This document shows, in pieces, positions 16,970-60,273 of a DNA stretch of 64,000 nucleotides; within the stretch, counting starts at the first letter, position 1; the number at the start of each line of letters is the position of its first letter. This DNA comes from Zygnema circumcarinatum SAG 698-1b. Lineage: Eukaryota; Plantae; Zygnematophyceae. The translations under genes were made by a program, and so were the position numbers. Location of the stretch: positions 3,387,909 through 3,451,908 of the forward strand of contig CM074804.1 of assembly GCA_037447605.1 (NCBI GenBank). The letters are read 5' to 3'. Under the pieces are notes generated by a model, which saw only the letters and a list, made by a program, of their open reading frames with translations, searched no databases and was not told the origin of the DNA.

Positions 16970-18600
16970 CCGTTGGCAACCTTGGAATTCAATGGTTGCA
17001 ACCATTGGCAATGGTTTGTTTTGTTTTGTCCCGTCGCAATGGTTGGCGACCTTGGAATGCAGTGGTTGCAACGATGGGCAATGGTTTTCAACGTTGCCAA
17101 CCATTGCCGCCAGCCCTAAACAACTATTGCCTATTGCCAATGGTTGGCAATCTTGGAATTCAAGGGCCGGCGGGCGGCAATGGTTGGCAACATTGAAAAC
17201 CATTGCCAATGGTTGCAACCGTAGGCAATGGTTGTTTCGGTCCGATGGCGGTCCGGGCGGCGATGGTTCCAACCATTTGGCAATTGCTGTTTCGGACCGG
17301 CTTGCCGAGAGACAAGCAGTCCGCCAAGGCGTCAGCTTGTGACGTCAGCCAAGAACAGCTCAAGAACAATGTCAACATTATTGGTCACACCATCGATGTT
17401 GATGTTTGACCATTTCCAGAAATGAAAGAAAAGAGTAAAATGTGTAATGGTTGTTTCGGTCCGATGGCAAGGGTTGTGTCGGTCGGGCAGCGATGGTTCC
17501 AACCATTGGCAATTGCTGTTTCGGACCGGCTTGCCGAGAGACAAGCAGTCCGCCAAGGCGTCAGCTTGTGACGTCAGCCAAGAACAGGTCAAGAACAATG
17601 TCCAACATGATTGGTCACACCATCGATGTTGATGTTTGACCATTTCCAAAAATGAAAGAAAAGAGTAAAAGGTGTGGGTGCGACACCGGGACTTCCCGGG
17701 AGGTCACCCATCCCAGTACTATTCCGGCCCACAGGCGCTTAGCTGCGGAGTTCTGATGGGATCCGGCGTAGTAGCCTAGGTATGATCGCACCACGTGTAC
17801 GGGCGTCCGAGTGTCCGCGCTTGTTCGTTCGTTTCTGTTTTCTTTTCTCCTTTCGAGGGAAGACATCGGACGCCTCCTTTCGGCAATGGTTGTTTGGGAC
17901 CGGCGGCAATGGTTGGAACCAGTGGCAATGGTTGTTTCGGTCCCGTCGCAATGGTGGGCAACCTTGGAATTCAATGGTTGCAACCATTGGCAATGGTTTT
18001 CAATGTTGCCAACCAAACCATTGCCGCTGGCCCTAAACAACGATCGCCAATGGTTGGCAACCTTGGAATTGAAGGGCCGGCGGCAATGGTTGCCAATCCA
18101 AAACCATTGCCAAATGGTTGCAACCGTACCGCAGGCAATGGTATGGTTGGAACCATTGGCAATCGTTGTTTGTTTTTGTCCCGTCGCAATGGTTGGCGAC
18201 CTTGGAATGCAGTGGTTGCAACGATGGGCCATGGTTTTCAACGTTGCCAACCACTGCCGCCAGCCCTAAACAACTATTGCCAATGGTTGGCAATCTTGGA
18301 ATTCAAGGGCCGGCGGGCGGCAATGGTTGGCAACATTGAAAACCATTGCCAATGGTTGCAACCGTAGGCAATGGTTGTTTCGGTCCGATGGCAAGGGTTG
18401 TGTCGGTCGGGCGGCGATGGTTCCAACCATTGGCAATTGCTGTTTCGGACCGGCTTGCCGAGAGACAAGCAGTCCGCCAAGGCGTCAGCTTGTGACGTCA
18501 GCCAAGAACAGCTCAAGAACAATGTCAACATTATTGGTCACACCATCGATGTTGATGTTTGACCATTTCCAGAAATGAAAGAAAAGAGTAAAATGTGTAA
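16970..18600. repeat. 5S rDNA repeat unit(s): palindrome-rich spacer plus about 225-bp subrepeats; period 1153 bp
   Basis: The about 225-bp block (aatggttgtttcggtccgatgg...gaaaagagtaaaatgtgt) occurs at about 17226, 17446, 18369 and 19930. The junction AATGTGTAA lies at 17439 and 18592. Region 17020-17245 repeats at 18170-18390. Confidence 0.85.
17676..17793 (-). rRNA. 5S rRNA gene, full length (118 nt)
   Basis: Reverse complement: TGGTGCGATCATACCTAGGCTACTACGCCGGATCCCATCAGAACTCCGCAGCTAAGCGCCTGTGGGCCGGAATAGTACTGGGATGGGTGACCTCCCGGGAAGTCCCGGTGTCGCACCC. A-box and C-box are present, helix I pairs, and T-runs (Pol III terminator) follow directly. Confidence 0.93.
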
Positions 18601-19187
18601 GGAGAACTATATACCGCCCCCTTTTTTTGGTTATCCCGCCACTGTTTTTTTGAAATCCGACCCTCCCATTTCGGCTATTCTGCCCCCCTCCCCCATTTTG
18701 GATATTCCGGGAGGAAATCGCCCTCCTGTTTTTAATATTTCTTTCCCGCGCCTCCCGTCCTCTCCCCGCCCCTCCCCTGCCCTCCCCCTCCCCTTCCCTT
18801 CCCTTCCCTTCCTCTTTCTCAGAAAGAAAGTGAAAGAGAGTGAGAGAGAGAGAGAGCAGAGTGAGAGCAGAGGAGAGGGACTACAGGAGAGAGCAAAGGA
18901 GAGAGAAGAGAGAGAGAGAGCAGAGGAGCGAGAGCCGAGGAGAAAGAGTATAGAGGAGAGAGAAAGAGCAAGAGGAGTGAGAGAAGAGGAGAGAGAGACT
19001 ACAGGAGAGAGCAAAGGAGAGAGAGAATGAGCAGAGGAGAGAGCAAAGGAGAGAGAGAGAGTGAGTAGAGTGAGAGCAAAGGAGAGAGAGACTAGAGGAG
19101 AGAGCACAGGAGAGAGCAAAGGCGAAAGAGAGAATGAGCAGAGGAGAGAGAGTAGGAGAGAGAAAGACTAGAGGAGAGAGAGCAGAG

Positions 19188-19218
<31 letters not shown>

Positions 19219-19923
19219 AGAGAGAGCAAGCAAGCAAGCCAACCATTACATCATGACAGAGCTTCACACCCACCAAAAGAAAAAGGATAAAAAGAGAATA
19301 AAAAGTTCCTAAATATAGAAAAACTCGCAAACCGAGAGGAAGAAGGGAAGGGGAGGGGTGGGCAGGGGAGGAGGGAGGGAGGGAGGGGTGGGCAGGGGAG
19401 GGAGGGCAGGGGAGGGGAGGGGAGGGAGGGGAGGGGAGGGAGGGAGGGAGGGGAGGGGAGGGAGGGAGGGAGGGAGGGGTGGGGTGGGCAGGGGAGGGAG
19501 GGAGAGGACGGGAGGGAGGGCAGGGAAGGGGAGGGAGGGGAGGGGAGGGAGGGAGGGGTGGGCAGGGGAGGGAGGGAGGGGTGGAGCAGGGGAGGGAGGG
19601 AGGGGTGGGCAGGGGAGGGAGGGAGAGGACGGGAGGGAGGGCAGGGAAGGGAGGGGAGGGGTGGGGTGGGCAGGGGAGGGAGGGAGGGGTGGGCAGGGGA
19701 TGTTAGGGGAGGGGTGGGCAGGGGAGGGGAGGGGATGGGTGGGCAGGGGAGGGGCGGGGAGAGGACGGGAGGCGCGGGAAAGAAATATTAAAAACAGGGG
19801 GGGCGATTTCCTCCCGAAATATCCAAAATGGGGGAGGGGGGCAGAATAGCCGAAATGGGAGGGTCGGATTTCAAAAAAACAGTGGCGGGATAACCAAAAA
19901 AGGGGGGCGGTATATAGTTCTCC
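18601..19923. mobile_element. Non-autonomous Mutator-like (MULE) element, 1323 bp, about 180-bp TIRs, 9-bp TSD AATGTGTAA
   Basis: Left end GGAGAACTATATACCGCCCC (18601-18781) is the near-perfect reverse complement of 19741-19923. AATGTGTAA lies at 18592-18600 and 19924-19932. The interior is (GA)-rich then (GGGA)-rich, with no transposase. Confidence 0.9.
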
Positions 19924-20159
19924 AATGTGTAATGGTTGTTTCGGTCCGATGGCAAGGGTTGTGTCGGTCGGGCGGCGATGGTTCCAACCATTGGCAATTG
20001 CTGTTTCGGACTGGCTTGCCGAGAGACAAGCAGTCCGCCAAGGCGTCAGCTTGTGACGTCAGCCAAGAACAGCTCAAGAACAATGTCAACATTATTGGTC
20101 ACACCATCGATGTTGATGTTTGACCATTTCCAGAAATGAAAGAAAAGAGTAAAATGTGT

Positions 20160-20198
20160 GGGTGCGACACTGAGACTTCCCGGGAGGTCACCCATCCC
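20160..20198 (-). pseudogene. Truncated 5S rRNA copy (3' 39 nt only)
   Basis: gggtgcgacactgagacttcccgggaggtcacccatccc matches 17676-17714 with 2 mismatches and has the same terminator flank. Similarity ends abruptly at 20198. Confidence 0.85.
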
Positions 20199-20300
20199 CG
20201 ACATGTTTCTTGCACCAGTTCTCACAAAAGGCTCAGCCTTTCCTCACCGTGTCCCTGAAATGGCCTGACTCACCATCGCGAGTAACTTCTTACCTCGTTT

Positions 20301-20636
20301 TTCCTTTTCTTATTCCTTCATCATCGAGTACTACCTCTGTTTTGCAGGTGGCCGCCACATAACTCTTATTTCCTTTTCTTATTCCTTCATCATCGAGTAT
20401 TACCTCTGTTTTGCAGATGAGCGCCACATAACTCTTATGTCCTTTTATTATTCCTTCATCATCGAGTATTACCTCTGTTTTGCAGATGAGCGCCACATAA
20501 CTCTTATTTCCTTTTATTATTCCTTCCTTATCGAGTATTACCTCTGTTTTGCAGATGAGCGCCACATAACTCTTATTTCCTTTTATTATTCCTTCATCAT
20601 CGAGTAGTACCTCTGTTTTGCAGGTGGCCGCCACAT
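20301..20636. repeat. 69-bp minisatellite, about 4.9 copies
   Basis: Units start at 20301, 20370, 20439, 20508 and 20577. The minus strand reads as a 23-aa repeat, KTEVILDDEGIIKGNKSYVALIC. Confidence 0.9.
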
Positions 20637-21254
20637 TCCGAGAAGCAAGCGCCTCCTGCAACCTGTCTGAGGGCTTGCTCGAGAAGGCAGCCAAGGCTTC
20701 CTGGACCGCACCGTACGGCGTGGTACGGACGGCGCTGGGGACTGCAACCCCCCGTCCGTACGTACATTTTGAAATGGTGAAATTTGCGTGGGAATAATAA
20801 AACTAGAGATAATAATAGCAGTCCTGGTCCGACCGGCTGGCGGGCGAGCACCACCTCCGCGATTGAAGTTTGAAGTTCGAACGGCGCAAGCGAGCCAGCC
20901 GCCAACGGTCGGTCGGGCCCCTCCGCGAGCTGCGCTGCCTCCCGCGCCCTCCCTCCGCGACGCCTCCCTCCCTCCCTCCCTTCCTCCCTTCCTCCCTCCC
21001 TCCCTCCTACCACCTCTTTCTTCCCTGCTCCATATCCCTGATCCCTTATCCTATTGTTATTATATCTTCCCTCTTTTCTCTCCCTGTTCGTTCCCCCTGT
21101 ATCCTATCCCTAATCCTTCCTTCCCACTTTCCTCGACCTGTTCCCTCGCTACTTGCGCGAGGTAGCTGGAGGCACGCCTGCAAACCTGCCTGCAGCAAGT
21201 TGGCTACCTCCTGCATATATTTTCAAGTTGCCGCCGCTCTCCCTGCATGCCGGC

Positions 21255-24412: not shown

Positions 24413-25102
24413 CATATCTCATGAAATCATCCACAAGCGATCCATATTCTGTGGGTTACTTCCCCTAACCTTGGCAACCTGGTACCTGCACTGGCCCACC
24501 AGTGAATTTCCTGCAGCCGTATGGACCCTTCACCTCGTGGTCCTGTATAGACTATTCGGCGATATGAGCATGTAGCATCCCTTGCCTGAGGTTTAGTCGG
24601 TGGTCCATACAGGCCTTGCCCCACTTGCCAGGTGACGTGTCTGTGATATCAAGCACGTTCAGCGATGAACAACAATATCCAGCTCTTCAACTTGTAGTGT
24701 TTTCAGTCAAGAATACCACCGCTTTGGAAACATAGAGGATATCCTAAAGACTTAGAGACGATTCCAGATTCCAAGCAGTGTCGCTCGGTGACACCCCGAA
24801 CAGGCTTGGTTGAAAGTGGTAGCACTCTTAAAGATGGAAGCTCGGAAATCTGGAATGCTGGCTATGCATCATCACCCCCTTCGAATCAGTTTGCGTCGGG
24901 AGGTTCAAGGATTTGAGTCACTGCCAATTGTACAATCACTTTTTTTAGTAAGACACAGACAGCATGCTGTGAGATGCACTCAGATTGCCGGAAGCACTTG
25001 TGGCATATTTCAATGCAAACATCGACAATAATTATTCGAACTAAAAAACCCAAGACCCATTTGTCCTTTTTAAGCTTTGAATTGTACATCCTGTATACTC
25101 AG

Positions 25103-25261
25103 CAGTGGCGGACCTACATACAAGTTGGGGGAACTCCCCCCCCTCAGATTTTGATAAAAAAAACCTTTTCTTTATTTGAATTTTGAATTTATTTTATGTA
25201 TGTATTTTATGCTGGTAGGGGGCTTAGCCCTCCCAAAGGAAAAATCCTGGATCTTCCTCTG
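25103..25261. mobile_element. hAT-type MITE, about 159 bp, degenerate TIRs, near-perfect 8-bp TSD
   Basis: Starts CAGTGGCGGACC and ends GGATCTTCCTCTG. Flanks are ATACTCAG (25095-25102) and ATACTCAA (25262-25269). The interior is AT-rich with subterminal G/C runs. Confidence 0.55.
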
Positions 25262-25689
25262 ATACTCAACAGTATTACTTGTGCTAGCGCAACTGTGTAC
25301 CGTCGTCAATGCAGTCCAAAGAAAAAGAAAATTAAAAGGCACCCCTTAACAGGACCTTGTAGTCATGAAGAGCGTCCTACACGACTACTCTACAACCCTA
25401 ATTCGCGGCGTTTGGCGAGAACAAGAAAGCACAAGAAGAAGCGAACCTTACACAGTCGACTATGAAGGCAGCAGAGAGAGCGTGGCTTGAGAGGATGCGT
25501 TGCCGCGGCCCCGCCCACACGTTGACGAGGAAGGCGCCGTCCCTCAGCCGCTCTGCTGGGGGGGAGGAAAGAAGCTCTCGTCTTCGCGGCCCAGAATTGG
25601 CGGCCGCGAGGACCCTCCTCCTCGCCGAGGGGGACTGAGGGAGGTTCTTTGGCAGCGGGAGCGGAGCATCGTAGTCCCGTCAAGTAGCC

Positions 25690-28600
25690 ATGGTTTCCGA
25701 TGCTGCCAAGAAGAAGGCAGCTGCAAAGAAGACTGCTGCAGCTGTGAAGCGAGGAGCAGTGAGCACTGGCGCCAGGGCACATGTCTCTGGAGGTGCCGCT
25801 GCATCGACTAAGCACACAGTTGAGGACTCGGTGTCAGATAAGGTGGCTGACGCATTGCCGGGGAAAAATCAGTCTCGTTCTGTTAATTCGCTTAAAAGTT
25901 TGGCTGAAACAGGGGGCAATACTACAAGGATACATTTCAAGTACAGGGAAAGAAGCGTTTGTATGCGGGCCTGTAAAATTTGGTTGCTGGCGCCGATGGT
26001 TCTGGACCCAACCAAGCTGAAGGAGTTCGTTGAATTGGTGGTCTGTAAGTTGCACCTGGCAAGTGTGGGCGAATTCGTTGCTTGAAACTGCTGTATTGAA
26101 AAAAGTTCGGCCTGTTTTGCAGTCAAATACAGTGCAAGCTTTATCTACCAATATTAGTACCGACAATGCCGAAACGGAAAGGCGAATGCTTGCGGATAAT
26201 ATAAATCGACTTACCTTTCCACCAAATTTAACCGCTCGACAGCGTGCTATACTGCATGGTACGTTTCGTCATAGAGTGTGGCCAACCGGAATGGCAAATG
26301 CCATAATAAAAGCGGTGGCTGGGAAAAGTGCAGTTACATTTTTCAACAATGTTATTGAAAGTAGTAAATGAAGAATCAACTTGTAACGTTCATTATCCCT
26401 TCATGGACTATTCGGCCGGTAATTATCCATGTTAGACAGATGAACTAGAAGTATCAAAACCCTTTAACATACCATGCACTTGGCAGGAAACATGTGTGGC
26501 AAAGTGTAGTTAAGTCCTGGTTTTTTCAGTATGGCTAGGTCTTCCGACTCAGCATAATTGCCAAATCTGAATCGTATGCCGAATGTTCTTGCTTGAGTCT
26601 CATTATCGCATGGTTGGGTTTTTGGATTGTAGGTTTAACATGTGTGCCACTAGATCTCGACTTGGACATAACTTAGACTTGGTGCAATGCAAGACTTGCA
26701 ATGCAATGCGGACTTGTTCCATATCACTTCAACAAACCCATCCTACATCCTAACCTTCCAATCCATTCTTTTATTTTTTTCCATTCCCACAGACTTTGCG
26801 GAAACTAGCGGATTGAAGCATACAAGCGTCGGAGACACCGAGGACACGCGAAAACTTGTAATCTGGAGAGATGGAGAGGAAGGAATGACTAAAGCCTTGC
26901 AGTCTGATTCTTCCACGATAACCATGGGAGAGCTTGCGGAGATGATCAAGGAGCACCTGCATGTTGACACAACACCGCTACTTCAGATGGAGGAAGTTAT
27001 CGTGCCTGAACGAAGACAGGAAAAGAATAAAGCAAGTAGTGGTAGAATTGCCACATTTGGAAGTGGTACAAAACAATTGTTGACGCGGGAGGAATTCGTA
27101 TCCAAGATGGGCCCTTTAATCAATTTAGAAAGGGTCAGTAACGACTCTAGACGAATCCTATCTTGTTCGCCAAACTAAAATCAAAGGAATGACGTTGTGT
27201 TTGCTCGTTTTTATCACGGAATTTAACCTACAATGTGGTACGTAAGGATGCATGTTCCTTAGAGCCTGGAATCCAGTGACTGAACCGCCGCCTGTAAAGG
27301 AACTTGTAGCTGAAATGGCTTCTTAGTTTCGCTGCACGCAGTGCAATCATGATCTTTCTGCACCTTGAGAAGTTTCTCGACAAGGTTTTGACAATCGTAA
27401 CGGCACCTGCTTCATTCAGCTTGCCTGTAGGTGAATATTTTCTAATGACATATTGTAGTTTGTTTCTTATTTTTTATTTTTTTTTCCGTGAATCTTGATA
27501 TGTTTGAATTGACCTTTTGTTGCTGTCTGCTAGGATGCAGAAATATCTGCTTCCACGGAATCCACTGCGTTGCTGAAGCCGGAAACTGCTCAGAAGAGGG
27601 GTCGGACTCTTCTCAACTTAAAGTGTACTGATGCAGAGGCAGGCCTCTTTGGAAAAACGCTCATAGTTCTGAAGCCCAACAAGAGTGAGCTTCTCCCACC
27701 TCACAAGTTCACTCCACGCGACGTGGTTTCCATTAAGCCCAACAAGGCTGAGTCCAGTTCTCCTCCGATCGGACAAGGCGTTGTGTATCGAGTGCGGGAT
27801 GGGGCCATTACTGTCGCTGTGGACGATATGCCAGAAGAGGGTTTGGACGTGCCACTACGAATTGAGAAATTGGCTAATGAAGTCACTTATAAGCGCTTGA
27901 AGGTATGCTAGGACTGATCCCTCCTTTGTCTGGTCGTGTCACCTTAGAAACTGTCGTTTGTTCGTCCCAGGAAGCAAGCAGCGTGTGAACTAAGTCTGCT
28001 TGCTTTATAGCTTGTGAAAAGCAGACATGTTTTCCATTCTGCGCGTTTGGAAATTCTCAGTGGCAAACTTTGGCTTTTGTAGGATACACTCTCCGAACTG
28101 GCGAAAGGATCCATTAAGGGCCCAGCCAACGACCTTGTGCCGGTGTGTCTCAGTTACCAGCTGGTTTTTTTTCTCTTGCGCTTAGGACATGTGAATGGCT
28201 CATGTTTCTGCCAGCAGCTCTGCATTTACTGCAATTGCTCAGAATGAGATAAAGAGTAAGCCACTAGTGCTGAGGAAACCCCTGGAAAAGCTTGATATGA
28301 TAAGCATCGCAGTTTCAAACCAGGCTGCACCGGAGGAAAGGTTAAGTCTGTGTATGAGAATTGTTTAAGTGATCTCAGCCGTGAGATTTCTTGTTAACAG
28401 GTTCTTTTTGGCGAAAGACCGCCAACTTTTGCCAAAAGGCCTCCGGAATTCAGCCCGTTCAATGGAGGTCTTGATCATTCTCAGCGGGCTGCTGTCACTA
28501 AAGCGCTTGCAGCTGCTGACGTTGTGCTGCTGCACGGCCCTCCAGGCACAGGGAAAACCACGACTGTGATCGAGGTTAGCCCTACTTGAGGCTCACCTAA

Positions 28601-31600
28601 CGTTCAATCAATGGGAGTCTTTGGCTATACAAAGTCGACCCCGGATTGGCGGCTGCGTACACATATTTATCCTCCGCCTTGCAAAGATAGATTGTGATTA
28701 CTTTGTTTTGGATTGTGAAGTGATTGCAAATCTCAAGGGGGCTGAAGACAACGAGTCTGCAGTACTAGAAGTCTTACGGTGACTTCTGACTTGAATTGAA
28801 AGTTGCCAAAAGTTGTGTATCGTAATGCCGTGACCTTGAGAATTCTTAGAAATGTGTGGGAAACACAGTTCCAACCCAAGTTTCCTTCCCTGCATGCCGC
28901 CCACAGTCGGTGCTGGCCGGCATGGCAGGTGATCCTGCAAGAGGTAAAGCGCGGCGGCCGGGTGTTGGTCTGCGCGGCCTCCAACATCGCAGTGGACAAC
29001 GTGGTGGAGAGGCTGTCACGTCACAAGGTCCGCCTCGTCCGCCTCGGCCACCCGGCGCGCCTCCTTCCGTCGGTCCTCGCCAGCGCCCTCGACGCGCAGG
29101 TGAGGCCTCTCCTCCCTCCCCCTCCCCTCCCCTCCCCCTCCCCCTCCCCTCCCCTCCCCTCCCCCTCCCCTTCCCCCTCCCCCTCCTCCCCCTCCCCCTC
29201 CCCTCCCCTCCCCTCCCCTCCCCTCCCTCCTCCCCTCCCCTCCCCTCCCCCTCCCCCTCCCCCTCCCCTCCCCTCCCCTCCCCTCCCCCTCCCCTCCCCC
29301 CTCCCCTCCCTCCCCCTCCCCCTCCCCTCCCCCCTCCCCCTCCCCCTCCCCCTCCCCTCCCCCTCCCCCTCCCCTCCCCTCCCCTCCCCCTCCCCCCTCC
29401 CCCTCCCCTCCCCCTCCCCCTCCCCCTCCCCCTCCCCCTCCCCTCCCCTCCCCCCTCCCCTCCCCTCCCCCTCCCCTCCCCTCCCCCTCCCCTCCCCCTC
29501 CTCCCCTCCCCTCCCCTCCCCCCTCCCCTCCCCCTCCCCTCCCCTCCCCCTCCCCTCCCCTCCCCTCCCTCCTCCCCCTCCCCCTCCCCTCCCCCCTCCC
29601 CCTCCCCTCCCCCTCCCCTCCCCCTCCCCTCCCCCTCCCCTCCCCTCCCCTCCCCTCCCCTCCCTCCCCCCTCCCCTCCCCTCCCCTCCCCTCCCCCCTC
29701 CCCTCCCCCCTCCCCTCCCCTCCCCCTCCCCCTCCTCTTCTCTCTTGTCCTCATCTCGACTGACTTGTTTGAAGGGGCAATAGCCTTTGCAGTACCTGTC
29801 CATCTGCAGTGTGCGTCTCTGGTGGTTTTTTTCTAATGATGAGTTGTTCCTCTCACGAGCTTTGGAGGAACTCATTGTTTGCATCGTTTAAGGATCTGCT
29901 TCGTTCAGTTCCTCCTCTTTGTCCTGCACCAGTGAGCGTTGTTTTAGATGCTGGCGATTTTATCCCTCTAGGTTAAGGTTAGGTTTTGGGTTACGGCTAA
30001 GGGCTCAGGGTTAAGGACTAGTGTTTGGGTGTAGGGTAGGGTTAGGGTTAGGGATAGATGTCGAAGGGTTTAAGGATTAGGGTGTAAGTAGAGTTTATCG
30101 TTTAGGGTTAGGGTTTAGGGTTCAGGTTTAGGGATTTGGGCTTGGGTTAGGTTTAAACTGTAGAGTTAAGGTTAGGATTTAGGGTTTAGGGTTTAGGATT
30201 AGGTTTACATTTACGGTTAAGTGTCAGGTCGATTTTAGGGTTTAGAGTTATGGTTAGGGTTAGGCTGAAGCATAGGATTTAGCGTTTAGAGTTTAGGGTG
30301 AGGGCCTATGGTTTAGGATTTGGGGTTGAGGGTTTAGGGATTAGGGTGTAGGGTTAGGATTAGGGTCAGGACTCGGTTAGTTTAGTGTTTATGTTTTGGT
30401 TAAAGTCTAGGCTTTAGGGTTGAGGGTTCTGATTTATGGTTTGGGTTTTGGTTTATGGGTTCATGGTGAGGGTTAGATTTAGGGTTAGGCATTGGGGTTT
30501 AAGTTTTAGGGAAATATGTTAGGGTTTAGGGCTAGGGTTAGGATCTAGAGAAGGGTAGAGTTCAGAGTTTTGGGTAAGGTTAGAATTTAGAGTTAGGATA
30601 GGGATAGGGTTTAGGTTTAAGGGTTTTGGGTCAGGGTTTAGGGTGAGGGACTAGAGTTTAGGGTTTGGGTTCTTGGTCGAAGGGTTTACGGTTAAGGTTT
30701 CGGAATAAGGAAGGGTCAGGACCAGGGTTTTGCGTTTTGGGTCAGGGTTAGGGTTTGGGTTAGGATTGATAAGTGAGATGGATTTGGCATTGATCTCGAG
30801 ATCAATGATTGATAAGTTCATTAATAGGCAAAATGGGCAGATGTGCATGTGGACATAACTGTGGGTTTTGAAGGATGGTCAAAGGGAGGCCTTTGTCCTC
30901 CCAGGATAATTTTTTCTTTTTTTTTTTTGTTTTATATACCATCTATTCTGCTGGCAGCTATGCCTTCAGCTTTTGATGCAGTGTTGCATTATCAGTGTGG
31001 TTTTCAGCTTTTCCTTCGGAAATAGCCAAACCGATCGTTTATCGCGTTCAGGTGCTGAAAACGGACAACAGCGCTTTGGCCAACGACGTGCGGAAGGAAA
31101 TGAAGCAGATAAGCAGCAAGCTGCTGAAGACGAGGGACCGCCGAGAGAGGGGGGAGCTGCGAAGGGAGCTGAAAAGGCTTGGAAAGGAGCAGCAGCAGCG
31201 GCAGCAGCAGGCAGTTGCTGACGTCATCAAAGACAGTGCTGTGGTGTTGACCACTTTGACGGGAGTCTTAACTCGTCAATTAGAGGTGAGGGAGGGAGTG
31301 GTAGAGAGCTCTGATACGCACTTTGCCATCTGTAAAGCTAACGTAGTTGGCAATCTCAAATTACTTCATGTCTTCAGTGGAACAACTCTTCAATATCTGC
31401 TGTCTTCCTCTGCAGGTTAAGTGTTAGACTCTTTTTCTCTGATGGACTGCCCTCGTTGTTTCAATCACAACAGCTTGCATGTAAATCCACTGCAGAGCTT
31501 ATTGCTTCACCTCATTGCGGTAGATGTTATGCAACTGAAGTCCATGTCACTGTTTACATACCCATGTCTGAGTGATTCCACCATGCTTCACTTGAGAGTC

Positions 31601-33761
31601 TCCCATTCCGACACAACAAAAACCTCATACTACCTTTCTTGCCACTCTCCACGACAGTACCCAAGAGCAGACCAACTACCTCGACCTTGCCAATGACACA
31701 CCTTTCTCCCGTAAATCCTTATCTGACAACCATACTGAACCTCACACCAACGGCTGCCCCTCCCCCCTCCCCCCCCTCCCTCTCCCCTCCCTTCTGCCCC
31801 TGCTCACAGGGCACCACCTTCGACCTGGTGGTAGTGGACGAGGCCGCGCAGGCCCTCGAGGCGGCGTGTTGGGCCGCCCTCCTGCGGGCGCGAAGGTGCC
31901 TCCTCGCGGGGGACCACCTCCAGCTGCCGCCCACAGTGCAGAGCAAGGAGGCGGAGAGGGAGGGCCTCGGAGTCACCCTCTTTGAGCGTCTCGCCACCTT
32001 GTTGGGGTCAGAGGTGATTTCCTGGATGATGCTGTTTACCGAGAGGTTTGTTGTCAGGGAGTGCAAACCATGTTGTTGTATTTCCTGGGGTCTGTAGTCA
32101 TGGAGTCAGGCAGTGAGTGTGGATATGCAGCTTCTGCGAAGTGGCATGGATTGTAAGAGTGAGCGCCTTCTCCTGAGTCAACCGTAGGTGAGTTTTGGAA
32201 GGAGGTCAGACTGGTTGGAACTTGTTTGATAGCTGTTTTCTGTGGAAAATCGTGTGTACTGCATGGAGCCTGTTTCACGAGAGCTTTAGTCAAAACATTC
32301 GAATTTAGGAGTGTAGTTGCTAATAAACTGGAGACATGCTTGAGAACCATTCGTGTGTGAATGTTTTTAAAGTTTCAAAGTAACAATGTTAAGATTGATT
32401 GGTTTCAGTTCTAGAATTATTCCAAATCTTAAGCCAGTGTCTGTTGAAATGCCCTGTGGAGGTAACTGGGCGCACACCTAAACTTGTTGTGCATGTGCTT
32501 GGCGCAAGTTTAGTGAGCCTCATGGCTTCCGGTCCTTCTCAAATTCCTTCTTTACGATTCCAGTCTGAAGGAATTTCCAAAATCGCAGTGTGTAGTGTGG
32601 CAAGCATTAGCTTTGAAGAAGGAGATCGCTGTAGAGTCATTGACACTTTGAGCTATATAAAAGGTAGTTTTCTTGTATGGCTTGCTTGGAAACAGCGCTT
32701 TGGTCTCGGCTTGTCCAAGTGTAATTGGCTATGTTTCTCCACTTGCGATAACTTTGACCTCTTACATTGGCTTCTTGCAGGCCACAGCCATGCTCACAGT
32801 GCAGTATAGAATGCACGCTGACATCATGCGCTGGTCATCTGAGGAGCTGTACGACGGAAAGGTCACTGCTCACAGCAGCGTTGCCACGCACACTCTCACT
32901 GGTTTGGAGGGCGTGAAGGACAGCTCAGCAGCCACTCCTGTGCTTGTGGTAATTGACACGGCAGGCTGTGATATGGAGGAGTTGATGGAGGAGGAGGGAG
33001 ACAGCAAGCAGAATCCGGGAGAAGCAGCGGTGGTAATGGAACATGCTCGAAGGCTAATAGCTGCTGGGCTCAACGGCGGAGATATCGGCATTATCACGCC
33101 CTATAGTGCTCAGGTATAACCATCACAATGTAAACTGTAGACCAATGTGGGGCACGCAGCGGCCCCTGTCTCATTTATGGATTTTCAGGGTCTTTCTCAT
33201 TTCATGCCTAGAGTCTAAGCCAGTCGGACGGAACTGGAACTCGATCTACATGGTTTCTGTCTGTTAAGAGGAGATACGGGTGTGCCATTCTGCTGCAGGT
33301 TGGCCTGTTGAAGGAGATGCGGGCGACCGAGCCAGGGCTATCAGGAATTGAAATCAGTACTGTGGATGGTTTCCAGGGGCGTGAGAAAGAGGCAATTATT
33401 ATCTCCATGGTTCGATCCAATGATTCGGGAGAGGTAGGTGTCATGATCAAAGATTTTGAACTGCAAAGCTTTTATACAACTCTCTCGTTATAAGTCACGA
33501 AGACCTCCCTTGTGTGGCATCTTTCCAGCAGCTTCCTCGTTGATCTGAACATGAGTAGGTCTGTTATGTCGATGGGAGTCTTAGCAGGTTGGATTTTTGG
33601 CGGATAATCGTCGTATGAACGTGGCTGTCACGCGCGCTCGGAGGCACTGCTGCCTCGTCTGTGACAGCGAGACAGTGGGGTCCAATCCGTTCCTCAAGCG
33701 GATGCTCACTTACATGGAGAACCACGGGGAGCTGCTTAGCGCTATGGAATACGTGTCGTGA
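25690..33761 (+). CDS. SMUBP-2/IGHMBP2-type SF1 (Upf1-like) helicase with an N-terminal R3H domain and a putative ABCF1-like leader
   Basis: Helicase motifs: [13 protein letters not shown] (Walker A), [66 protein letters not shown] and NVAVTRAR. The plant SMUBP-2 start ([15 protein letters not shown]|DAEI..ETAQKRG) is preceded by the R3H motif [16 protein letters not shown]|[21 protein letters not shown]. The leader exon is [14 protein letters not shown]. Helicase and R3H are firm; joining of the leader exon is inferred. Confidence 0.85.
29104..29740 (+). repeat. C-rich (CCCCT/CCCTC)n low-complexity tract in an intron
   Basis: About 640 bp of nearly pure C/T starting 4 nt after the donor CAG|GTGAGG at 29100. 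Confidence 0.9.
29968..30766 (+). repeat. Degenerate interstitial telomere-like repeat (TTTAGGG/TTAGGG) in helicase intron 29100-31051
   Basis: Many exact and variant units, e.g. gggttagggttaggg and tttagggttagggtttagggttcagg, over about 800 bp. The G-rich strand is the sense strand. Confidence 0.85.
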
Positions 33762-57400: not shown

Positions 57401-60273
57401 GTTTGCGCTCTTATCCTCTGTTTCGGATACTTTAATATTTTCTTTCCCTCTTCCGCCCCACCTGTCTGCTAACTACTTGTTTAGGTTGTGGTTTTCCCTC
57501 TCTTCATGTACTGCAAAAAAAGTTTGACTTGTCGACTTGCGTGCTCACCAACATCAGAACATCTCAATCGCTTCTACACATATTCATGCTGAGGCTGGAT
57601 CGATTTTTAGCTAGTAATGTAGATGCAATGATGCGCGAGTTTCTCAAGTTGGAAATGCGACCTTTGTTGAACAAGGGAGATGGTAGGGGCATGTTTCATT
57701 CACGTTCCATTGTATCTTTGCCCTCTTTTAGAATTTGCGCTTTGTAGTTTGCAAGAAGCTGATCGTCATTTTTTTAGGTAGTGTTGCAATCAATGTTTTA
57801 TCCTATGGTTGGAGCTAAAGCATACACTGTCATTGAATTGGAGTTTTCAGCTTACACCTTAATTGATAAGATACTCTGGCATAAGAAGAAGGTAAGAGTT
57901 TTGAAATATGAGCTTACTTTTTGTATTTGTTGTCCAAATGAAGTGACTTAGGCTGTTAATGGGTAGTTGCTGAATTTTTTCAATGGATGTTGCCTGTCGT
58001 ATTCCTACCTGGTCAATGGCTGCAGACAATTGAGGGTGTCGAACAGGAGCTATCAAATGTGGATGCAGCTCTTCAAGAGGCAGCAGAAACTCTCAGCCAT
58101 GTGTCTGTATTTGTACCGCTTTTGGCTACATGGGGAGGCCAAGACTCGTTAGTGTCTTCACAACTAAGGGCCGCATTGGCGCAAGCAGTAAGCACATCAT
58201 ATGACGATAGAAGAGGGAACGAGAGTGGTCTTGAAGGGCCAGACATAGCAGGGCAAGTGAAGGATGGCAAAAGCCTGAAGATGGGGAAAGGGGACGAGCT
58301 AGCACCATTGGAGGACATTATTAAAAGTTTAATGAAAATCAAAGACACTGTGGAAGCAGGCTCAAGAGAAAAGGAGGTGAATGAGCAGCTGGAGACCACG
58401 ATACAACAAACCAGGTTGGTATACTGGTTGCTTTGATTGGTTGCTCAGATGGAATCACTTGTTGGGCCGTTTTGCTAAGTTGCGATGTTTCCTTCAATCA
58501 GTCTACTGAGTCATTTGAACCAAACCATGGGTGCTCTCTTTGCTGCTTTCCTCATCAGTAAGGGTGAGGCCACAGAAAGATGCCTTCATGCAATTCAGTA
58601 ACCCATGCCCCAAATAAGGTGGAGTTGTGAGTGTCTTGCAACGTATGACGAAGTGGAGCTGACCAAAGGCAGGAATCATGATGATATGCAGACGGTTGGA
58701 TTTCGTGTGGCGGAGTGAGAAACGTGCGCAAGAGGAGGAGATCGCCTTTTACAGAGGCTGCCATGCAGTCAATGTGAGTCTGTAATTCCCTTGCAATTGT
58801 AGGTATTTGGGATGTTCAGGCTGATTTTCCTTCATGCAATCATTAACGTATAGACAATTGTATTAAGGTTATTTGTGGAGGCACTGTCCACCCTGTACCG
58901 TGTTTGTGTGAAGATAGTCTTTAGCCCTTGGAGAGCCTTCTGCGGTGATATCAATATCTTGATGTTGACGTGCCAATGACCGTTTACGCAGCTGTACTGA
59001 ATGATGCAGGCGGCGCATGTGGAGAGGGTCACTCGCGTGGCACAAAGTGCATTGGAGAATGCCTTAGGAAATGCAACTAAGGTCATAGCTGTCGCTGCAG
59101 CAGCCATTCAACAGGTATGGTTGTGGGCCCCAGCCCCTCCTGTGCCGTAGGCTGTGACATGGATTGGCGTGCTAGAGAGTAAGCGTGGAAGCAGAGATGA
59201 CACGTACATTATCAGCTCTTTTGTTTGATGACGTCGAATAGCAGCCTGCGCTTGCCATTTGTTTTCAGGCCAAGTTATAATTAAAATAAAGCTGTTGTAT
59301 TGGTATTTGTTGGAGTCTAATGCGGCTCAAAAAACCAAATGTGTGATATCCTGACAAGAATGGCCTTCATGCTTTGCTCCAGGTTCTAATCGCTATGCAC
59401 CAGAGCCAAACCATGTCTTCAGACGAAGCAGACGTGCAAGTGCTCAAGCAGCTGCAGGTAAGGAGACTCTGTGGCCTTGATGTGAGACCTAAATTGTTTG
59501 TGGTGTTGTTCTCTGTGCACTTGATTTGCATTGAGCTGGGTGTACTTATGAATCCTTCAAATTCTGGATCGACCTCTTGTATTGTCCGGAAAAAAATGAT
59601 ATCAAACAGCACTGTTTAGCCCGTCACATTGGATGAAGGCAGGCAAATGTAATTTTTGATAGACTAGCTCCTTCACAAAAGCTGCACAATGGACGCCGTC
59701 TGCCTTCATTCTCCGTTTAATCCAACGTTTCGCTGAAACCACATGGTTGCATGCTTTGATTCCTGCAGAGTGCTGCCCCATCCCTGCGACGATTTGTGGA
59801 AGTATTGCCAGAGACTCTAAAGACTCTGTCAGCTGGGGGAGAAGGGGACGGGGAAGGGGGAGGGGAAGGAACTCCGTCTATAGTGAAACAGGCAGCCGGG
59901 AAAGTGATGAGCGCCCTTGAGCGAGAGTACAAGGACCGCCTCCAGGTGAGAGGCGTGCGGGAGTTCTGTGATGCTCGTCCATCCCGTATGGTGTCCATCC
60001 AGACTTAGAAAAGCTTCACACTTTTGGAATTCGAAACCATACGCGCTTTCTCGCGAAATAAGTACTAACAGCGAATTGAAAAGTACTTCCTTCCAAAACA
60101 AACAAATTTCATTTCAAAGTTTCAAGTCAGAAATCCCCAAATGTTCAAGGTGGACGTTAGGTCTAGGTAACCGCACTCGACTTTTAGCTGGAACACATTT
60201 GGATATAAGCACATAGAGAAATTCTCCCTTGCTCGCTCCGTACCCCCCACTCCCCACTCCCCCNNNNNNNNNN

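Follow-up and report, generated by a model that had tools for sequence, protein, structure and literature searches.

A probable chimeric gene in the alga Zygnema circumcarinatum: an ABCF-like leader exon spliced in frame to an R3H-containing SMUBP-2-type helicase

Gene Layout and RNA-Supported Splicing

The stretch of DNA analyzed here (the window) comprises 64,000 nucleotides of contig CM074804.1 (assembly GCA_037447605.1, positions 3,387,909 to 3,451,908) of the zygnematophycean alga Zygnema circumcarinatum SAG 698-1b. It carries on its forward strand a gene in which a short first exon, resembling the N-terminal tail of ABCF proteins, precedes an R3H domain and a helicase of the SMUBP-2/IGHMBP2/Hcs1 family. 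The window is eukaryotic in character, with 48% guanine plus cytosine (G+C) and introns of the GT..AG type, and the full gene model has 12 coding exons for a protein of 827 amino acids, with the stop at 33761 and the C-terminus ...SAMEYVS. RNA contigs from four public runs of the same organism (X1, X2, X5 and X7 among their labels), which hold no strand information, were mapped to positions 24600-29000 and verified the first six introns. Exons 8-12 and the donor of exon 7 were placed by homology, guided by P0002, a relative belonging to the contig L001 of a second species described below. The gene is laid out as follows:

25460-25689, + strand: 5' untranslated region (UTR), overlapped by a minus-strand transcript; RNA contigs over exon 1 begin at 25388 (X1), 25460 (X2) and 25467 (X5), which are contig starts and not mapped transcription start sites
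25690-25761, + strand: probable ABCF2-type Lys/Ala leader core, codons 1-24 (pattern of codons 1-14, residues 15-22, nucleotide identity with L001)
25690-25842, + strand: coding part of exon 1, 51 amino acids, donor AAG|GT (RNA joint in four of four runs, depth 14-129)
25843-26122, + strand: intron 1, 280 nucleotides, phase 0, partly retained (RNA GT..AG joint and unspliced contigs)
26123-26258, + strand: exon 2, first half of R3H (RNA joints; Pfam R3H)
26793-27133, + strand: exon 3, second half of R3H and linker (RNA joints; frame; Pfam R3H)
27534-27902, + strand: exon 4, SMUBP-2/HCS1 1B domain (RNA joints; PF21138, 62.5 bits)
28083-28142, + strand: exon 5 (RNA joints; frame)
28401-28574, + strand: exon 6, Walker A GPPGTGKT (RNA joints, motif, AAA_11/AAA_12 search, frame)
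28929-29099, + strand: exon 7 (acceptor by the RNA joint 28574|28929, donor by homology)
31052-31285, + strand: exon 8 (homology model)
31810-32013, + strand: exon 9, motif II DEAAQ (homology model; domain search)
32781-33113, + strand: exon 10, AAA_12 (homology model; domain search)
33299-33433, + strand: exon 11 (homology model)
33588-33761, + strand: exon 12 and stop codon (homology model; C-terminus the same in P0002 and land-plant orthologues)

Six-frame reading gives a 131-codon open reading frame (ORF) opened by the ATG at 25690, with an in-frame stop five codons 5' of it (segment 25675-26082) and the start context GCC ATG G. The original prediction, made from the letters alone, let the first exon run to 26044 and joined it by a phase-1 splice from 26045 to 26132 (26044|26133) to an R3H-helicase, which was thought to have captured an ABCF 5' end. 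This joint is absent from all four runs. The sole splice joint at exon 1 is 25842|26123, found in every run (depths 42, 14, 30, and 129, comparable to those of the exons downstream), in phase 0 and with intron borders reading AAG|GTGGCT ... TTTTGCAG|TCA; exon 1 thus codes for 51 amino acids. The predicted exon and intron coordinates and the phase thus had to be replaced, whereas the central claim held: the RNA contains the leader exon and the R3H exon joined in frame, and the leader is of the ABCF type. Together with the other RNA joints (26258|26793, 27133|27534, 27902|28083, 28142|28401, and 28574|28929) the six RNA-supported exons form one open frame of 411 amino acids that runs from the leader methionine through R3H and the 1B domain to GPPGTGKT.

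Exon 1 continues in the RNA in two ways only, either joined to 26123 or with intron 1 kept; the RNA contigs of the four runs contain neither a third continuation nor loose ends of exon 1. The unspliced contigs across 25813-26150 have depths of 14 (X1), 10.4 (X2), and 7.0 (X5), to be compared with junction depths of 42, 14, and 30, and the intron-retained form cuts the leader ORF short, at 131 amino acids in the window (ending at 26085) and at 87 in L001. Further downstream, the main contig of X2 uses an acceptor at 27541 (CAG|AAATAT), seven nucleotides 3' of 27534, which shifts the frame and leads to a stop within 12 codons, so that it probably represents an unproductive isoform.

The Helicase Body and Its Family

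The exon translations matched AAA_11 and AAA_12 and contain GPPGTGKT and VVVDEAAQA, and the 1B domain of the family (PF21138) was found with 62.5 bits against a cut-off of 27. PF21138, AAA_11, AAA_12, the Walker A motif GPPGTGKT, and motif II DEAAQ are all shared with SMUBP-2/IGHMBP2/Hcs1 proteins (AT2G03270 type). The helicase core is 62-70% identical to land-plant and Spirogloea orthologues and has thousands of relatives, of which the best 120 are nearly all from plants and 596-744 amino acids long (most about 650, besides one fusion model of 1091), many of them named SMUBP-2 or Hcs1-like. A maximum-likelihood tree, midpoint-rooted without an outgroup and with Spirogloea on a long branch, placed the window gene and L001 as sister to this member of the Zygnematophyceae (support 100/100), beside the land-plant clade. 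The gene is therefore regarded as the orthologue and not as an extra paralogue.

The N-terminal extension sets the protein apart. Spliced exons 2-3 matched Pfam R3H with 40 bits (cut-off 26.8), and for the R3H region of P0002 the best match among solved structures is human SMUBP-2 R3H (1MSZ). Land-plant orthologues of about 650 amino acids have neither leader nor R3H; among the best 120 core relatives Pfam R3H was found in none save the protein of L001 itself, and a search for relatives of the R3H extension (residues 1-160 of P0002), which relies on shared 5-mers, returned only P0002. As to the leader, the comparison with orthologues suggested by the original prediction covered 18 sequences (Marchantia, Riccia, Calypogeia, Ceratodon, conifers, Amborella, angiosperms, and Spirogloea), none of which begins with it, in gene models that may miss 5' exons. 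To our knowledge, an ABCF-type leader has not been described in the SMUBP-2/IGHMBP2/Hcs1 family. The Spirogloea model had seemed by eye to begin within an R3H domain, but testing did not support this.

Like the window protein, IGHMBP2 pairs its helicase with an R3H domain, but there the R3H domain lies downstream of the core (PMC3505976), whereas here it lies upstream, so that the two modules stand in reverse order compared to animals. The AN1 zinc finger of IGHMBP2 is lacking in the window protein, which stops directly after AAA_12. The R3H domain of IGHMBP2 raises its RNA affinity about 10-fold and its ATPase activity about 4-fold, and the protein has been reported with ribosomes and tRNA (PMC3505976).

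The Leader and the N-Termini of ABCF Proteins

As originally predicted, the ORF opened at 25690 starts like an ABCF protein: its first 22 residues are identical at 18 positions to the form common in angiosperms. The agreement rises to 20 of 22 with L040, one of the loci retrieved when a degenerate DNA pattern of codons 1-14, with positions 6 and 12 left loose, was searched in 241 million metagenome records. This pattern drew 65 loci, of which 63 are recognizably ABCF-type, two are uninformative (L009, a degenerate copy, and L055, a truncated stretch) and none is a recognizable gene of another kind. Most of them (61) are plant-type and continue with ISDRTCTGVL-SHP-SRDI[RH], in most cases followed by Walker A and LSGG twice, while L032 and L033 are G+C-rich, green-algal-looking ABCF genes. 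Within the searches made, the leader motif is thus specific to ABCF genes. L040 is a complete ORF of 599 amino acids with two Pfam ABC_tran domains and ABC_tran_Xtn; since yeast Arb1 is the closest relative with a solved structure (E 7e-190), the proteins retrieved with the pattern are considered ABCF2-type.

What the window protein shares with ABCF2/Arb1-type proteins (plant ABCF1/GCN1) are the first 22-24 residues, MVSDA-x-KKKAA-x-KK-xAAAxKRG, counted from the initiator methionine. It differs in that the ABC nucleotide-binding domains, the linker and the ISDRTCTGVL/SHPxSRDI block are all missing; neither an ABC Walker A nor an LSGG motif exists in any frame of the 64 kilobases, in agreement with the first reading of the window. 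The N-terminal domain of ABCF2 has been described as lysine/alanine repeats (Murina et al., PMC6723617). The Arb1 chain in the solved 60S complex begins after its leader, and for this reason no structure shows the contacts of the tail.

Because the ABCF set had been fetched with the window's own first 14 codons, residues 15-22 were tested apart. The window has TAAAVKRG at these positions and L001 has AAAAVKRG, where ABCF proteins have AAAA[AEV]KRG, i.e., seven and eight matches out of eight, a level reached by none of 20,000 shuffles of the remaining exon 1. When only residues 15-24 were shuffled locally, 27 (window) and 5 (L001) of 20,000 reached the match (p about 0.001 or less). A profile of the whole ABCF exon 1 matches at 25690 with E 1.5e-8 (2178 six-frame segments), and two full-length ABCF proteins (597 and 599 amino acids) used in tblastn found a single match in the window, at 25690-25857 (codons 1-56, E 2e-7). 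Past about residue 24 the similarity has no statistical support, and the ABCF-like part of exon 1 thus comprises residues 1 to about 24. General searches (PDB, with no matches, and the phmmer and BLASTP searches described below) failed because the segment is short and of low complexity. The ESM Atlas gave uninformative scores of at most 0.77 to unnamed bacterial clusters, and a search for homologous proteins gave P0001 only, which led to L001.

A further stretch of 11 residues, which the original prediction had likened to ABCF after the leader, is not significant in the profile test, and its VADAL part is translated from intron 1. The view that this stretch or the exon-1 tail is demonstrably ABCF-derived was dropped, as no significant match remained once the first 14 columns were removed from the profile. 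Exon 1 of the plant ABCF genes with genomic sequence (among L002-L066) ends right after SRDI[RH], at a conserved intron position, and the leader lysines are mostly coded by AAG.

The Same Leader in a Second Species

P0001, the sole database relative of the leader, is encoded on L001, a 4.2-kilobase Logan RNA contig from another species. This contig has the same leader (23 of 24 residues identical to the window) in a 60-codon exon 1 with a phase-0 donor, then a retained intron (1407-2069), and from 2070, after a phase-0 acceptor, the open frame of the same R3H-helicase. The leader-helicase fusion is therefore not specific to the window genome. The two proteins are about 80% identical in the helicase core and about 53% in R3H and linker, and exon 1 beyond the leader is only 19% identical. 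Upstream of the L001 gene, on the opposite strand and head-to-head, the same contig carries a gene for an aldose 1-epimerase, which is absent from the 64-kilobase window.

The leader stands out also at the nucleotide level. Between the window and L001 it is identical at 66 of 72 nucleotides, between a 5' UTR and a remainder of exon 1 that are both unalignable. Where both genes encode the same residue, 4 of 22 codons differ in the leader vs. 283 of 520 elsewhere in the gene (Fisher p = 8.5e-4), and no other 24-codon window, out of 691, is conserved to this degree. The same codons vary freely at synonymous sites across plant ABCF genes, so ABCF leaders do not in general show this conservation. 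It could possibly reflect a constraint at the RNA level or the promoter level, or the overlapping minus-strand transcript described below. Recent gene conversion from an ABCF paralogue was considered and found unlikely, since RNA contigs pass through the leader unbranched.

Origin of the Chimera

The gene is a real, expressed and conserved chimera, and it represents a new architecture in a known helicase family, reached via a known kind of event. We consider it probable that this 827-amino-acid gene is the streptophyte orthologue of SMUBP-2/IGHMBP2/Hcs1, a helicase of superfamily 1 (SF1), to which an ABCF2-type leader and an R3H module have been added. Chimeric genes that arose through capture of a 5' exon or through exon shuffling are familiar, e.g., jingwei and Sdic of Drosophila. 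The resemblance lies in a short 5' coding exon of one gene spliced in frame to an unrelated body, in one lineage only; the difference is that the piece captured here is a conserved tail of 24 residues without a folded domain. Most likely, the 5' end of an ABCF gene would have been placed upstream of the helicase by duplication or by rearrangement and fusion in an algal ancestor. The direction from ABCF to helicase is suggested by the distribution of the leader, which ABCF genes carry all the way from green-algal-looking contigs to angiosperms and which is otherwise confined to this helicase lineage. The N-terminal extension would accordingly consist of two added modules, the leader in exon 1 and then R3H in exons 2-3. 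The leader exon is transcribed, and through its phase-0 splice to the R3H exon the protein would begin with the ABCF tail. Selection may have kept only the first 24 codons, and the leader could act alongside R3H as a short, flexible, basic tail touching nucleic acid or the ribosome, or as a localization signal.

Several observations weigh against this interpretation. The significant likeness to ABCF covers 22-24 residues of low complexity, there is some circularity in any score that takes in codons 1-14 (the pattern was derived from the window), and the ABCF profile deprived of its first 14 columns has no match in the window. In BLASTP of the leader, a check proposed with the original prediction, the 20/22 match to L040 amounts to only 13.9 bits and is not significant with composition adjustment; phmmer with the 118-residue read-through exon, a short, low-complexity query that is in part a translation of intron 1, had no matches among 1.84 billion representatives. 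The kinship of leader and ABCF was traced with ABCF genes of other organisms. Intron 1 is retained in roughly one fifth to two fifths of the coverage in three of the four runs of the window species, the only assembled L001 contig keeps it, so that the spliced joint is inferred there, and the chimeric protein is predicted from RNA and sequence.

The weak database scores and the lack of significant likeness past about residue 24 would be expected if a Lys/Ala-rich N-terminus had arisen independently and its likeness to ABCF were a coincidence of composition. We regard such convergence as quite unlikely: the match starts right at the initiator methionine, is almost perfect (18-20 of 22) and extends to the residues outside the search pattern, where shuffles that keep the local composition rarely equal it, and the motif drew ABCF genes and no other recognizable family from the metagenome records. 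Retention of intron 1, on the other hand, bears on whether the leader is translated as part of the helicase at all. Exon 1 could be the 5' remnant of a decayed ABCF copy that serves as a leader or upstream ORF, with the helicase starting at a downstream methionine or from a start site within intron 1. The retained form, which ends the leader ORF at 26085, the intron kept in L001, a depth of the exon 2-4 contig above that of exon 1 in three runs, and a freely diverged exon-1 tail would all fit such a relic. However, the junction is in phase 0 and in frame in both species, 23 of 24 leader residues were kept while the flanking UTR and exon-1 tail became unalignable, in every run the spliced junction has more depth than the intron-retained form, and the start context is good; a relic exon is therefore unlikely in our view. 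That one promoter and leader exon serve, through alternative splicing, both the helicase and an ABCF body located far away seems extremely improbable; this idea was rejected in view of the RNA depth and because exon 1 has no further splice partners: no ABC exons lie on either strand of the 64 kilobases, exon 1 leads in the RNA only to 26123 or into the retained intron, without loose ends, and its depth is not above that of the helicase exons, contrary to what housekeeping use by an ABCF gene would give.

Capture of an ABCF leader by the helicase would bear on the tail itself. The Lys/Ala tail of ABCF2/Arb1-type proteins is carried by ABCF proteins from green-algal-looking contigs to angiosperms and has no function assigned to it. 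That the tail alone has moved to an unrelated helicase and is nearly unchanged in two species argues that it works by itself, and the gene gives streptophyte algae a clear case of exon capture that is verified by RNA. It is tempting to go further and to speculate that the ABCF2-type 24-codon leader is a portable module constrained at both the protein and the RNA level, i.e., a tail for targeting to the ribosome, rRNA or the nucleolus, perhaps with a role in cis (in translation initiation or in the overlapping divergent promoter), whose transfer recruited an IGHMBP2-type helicase to the translation machinery in zygnematophyte-like algae. Such a module would explain why nucleotide conservation between the two genes is highest in the leader, although we hold this extended scenario to be rather doubtful.

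Upstream Region and a Divergent or Antisense Transcript

Two features were noted in the region 5' of the leader:

25394-25401, + strand: telo-box-like AACCCTAA, 296 nucleotides 5' of the ATG, the sole + strand copy in the window
24921-25451, - strand: intron of a divergent/antisense transcript (CT..AC joint 24920|25452 in X7; donor TGT|GTAAGG; first exon to the right of 25452)

The telo-box-like element is present at 25394 as first reported, where it had prompted the suggestion that the helicase might have captured an ABCF promoter as well. Of 37 distinct plant ABCF loci, 21 have an AACCCTA core within the 400 nucleotides 5' of their ATG, vs. about 5% by chance; L001 has none in the corresponding stretch. 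Promoter capture from ABCF, resting on one AACCCTAA at -296 and with no counterpart in L001, is suggestive only and should be taken as a lead. A scan for sigma-70 promoters and terminators, a bacterial model not fitting a eukaryote, gave no match.

One contig of X7 combines the minus-strand joint 24920|25452 with the plus-strand joint of exon 1 and exon 2. From these joints it follows that a divergent or antisense transcript starts inside or beside the 5' region of the helicase (25452-25840).

Other Features of the Window

Intron 7 contains a microsatellite of about 620 base pairs (29106-29735), (CTCCCC)n/(CCTCC)n, which on both strands produces long spurious ORFs rich in Pro/Ser or Gly/Arg. 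It is followed in the same intron, at 29971-30671, by degenerate telomere-like arrays of the plant type (TTTAGGG/TTAGGG units, 60-68% matches), into which most telo-box-like 8-mers of the window fall. Long, low-complexity repeats with a purine/pyrimidine bias occupy 18500-21000 and give rise to spurious Gly/Arg/Glu-rich or Ser/Leu-rich ORFs; within this region a tandem 'ICKTEVILDDEGIIKGNKSYVAL'-type repeat ORF lies on the minus strand at 20290-20694. Ten N at 60264-60273 mark an assembly gap.

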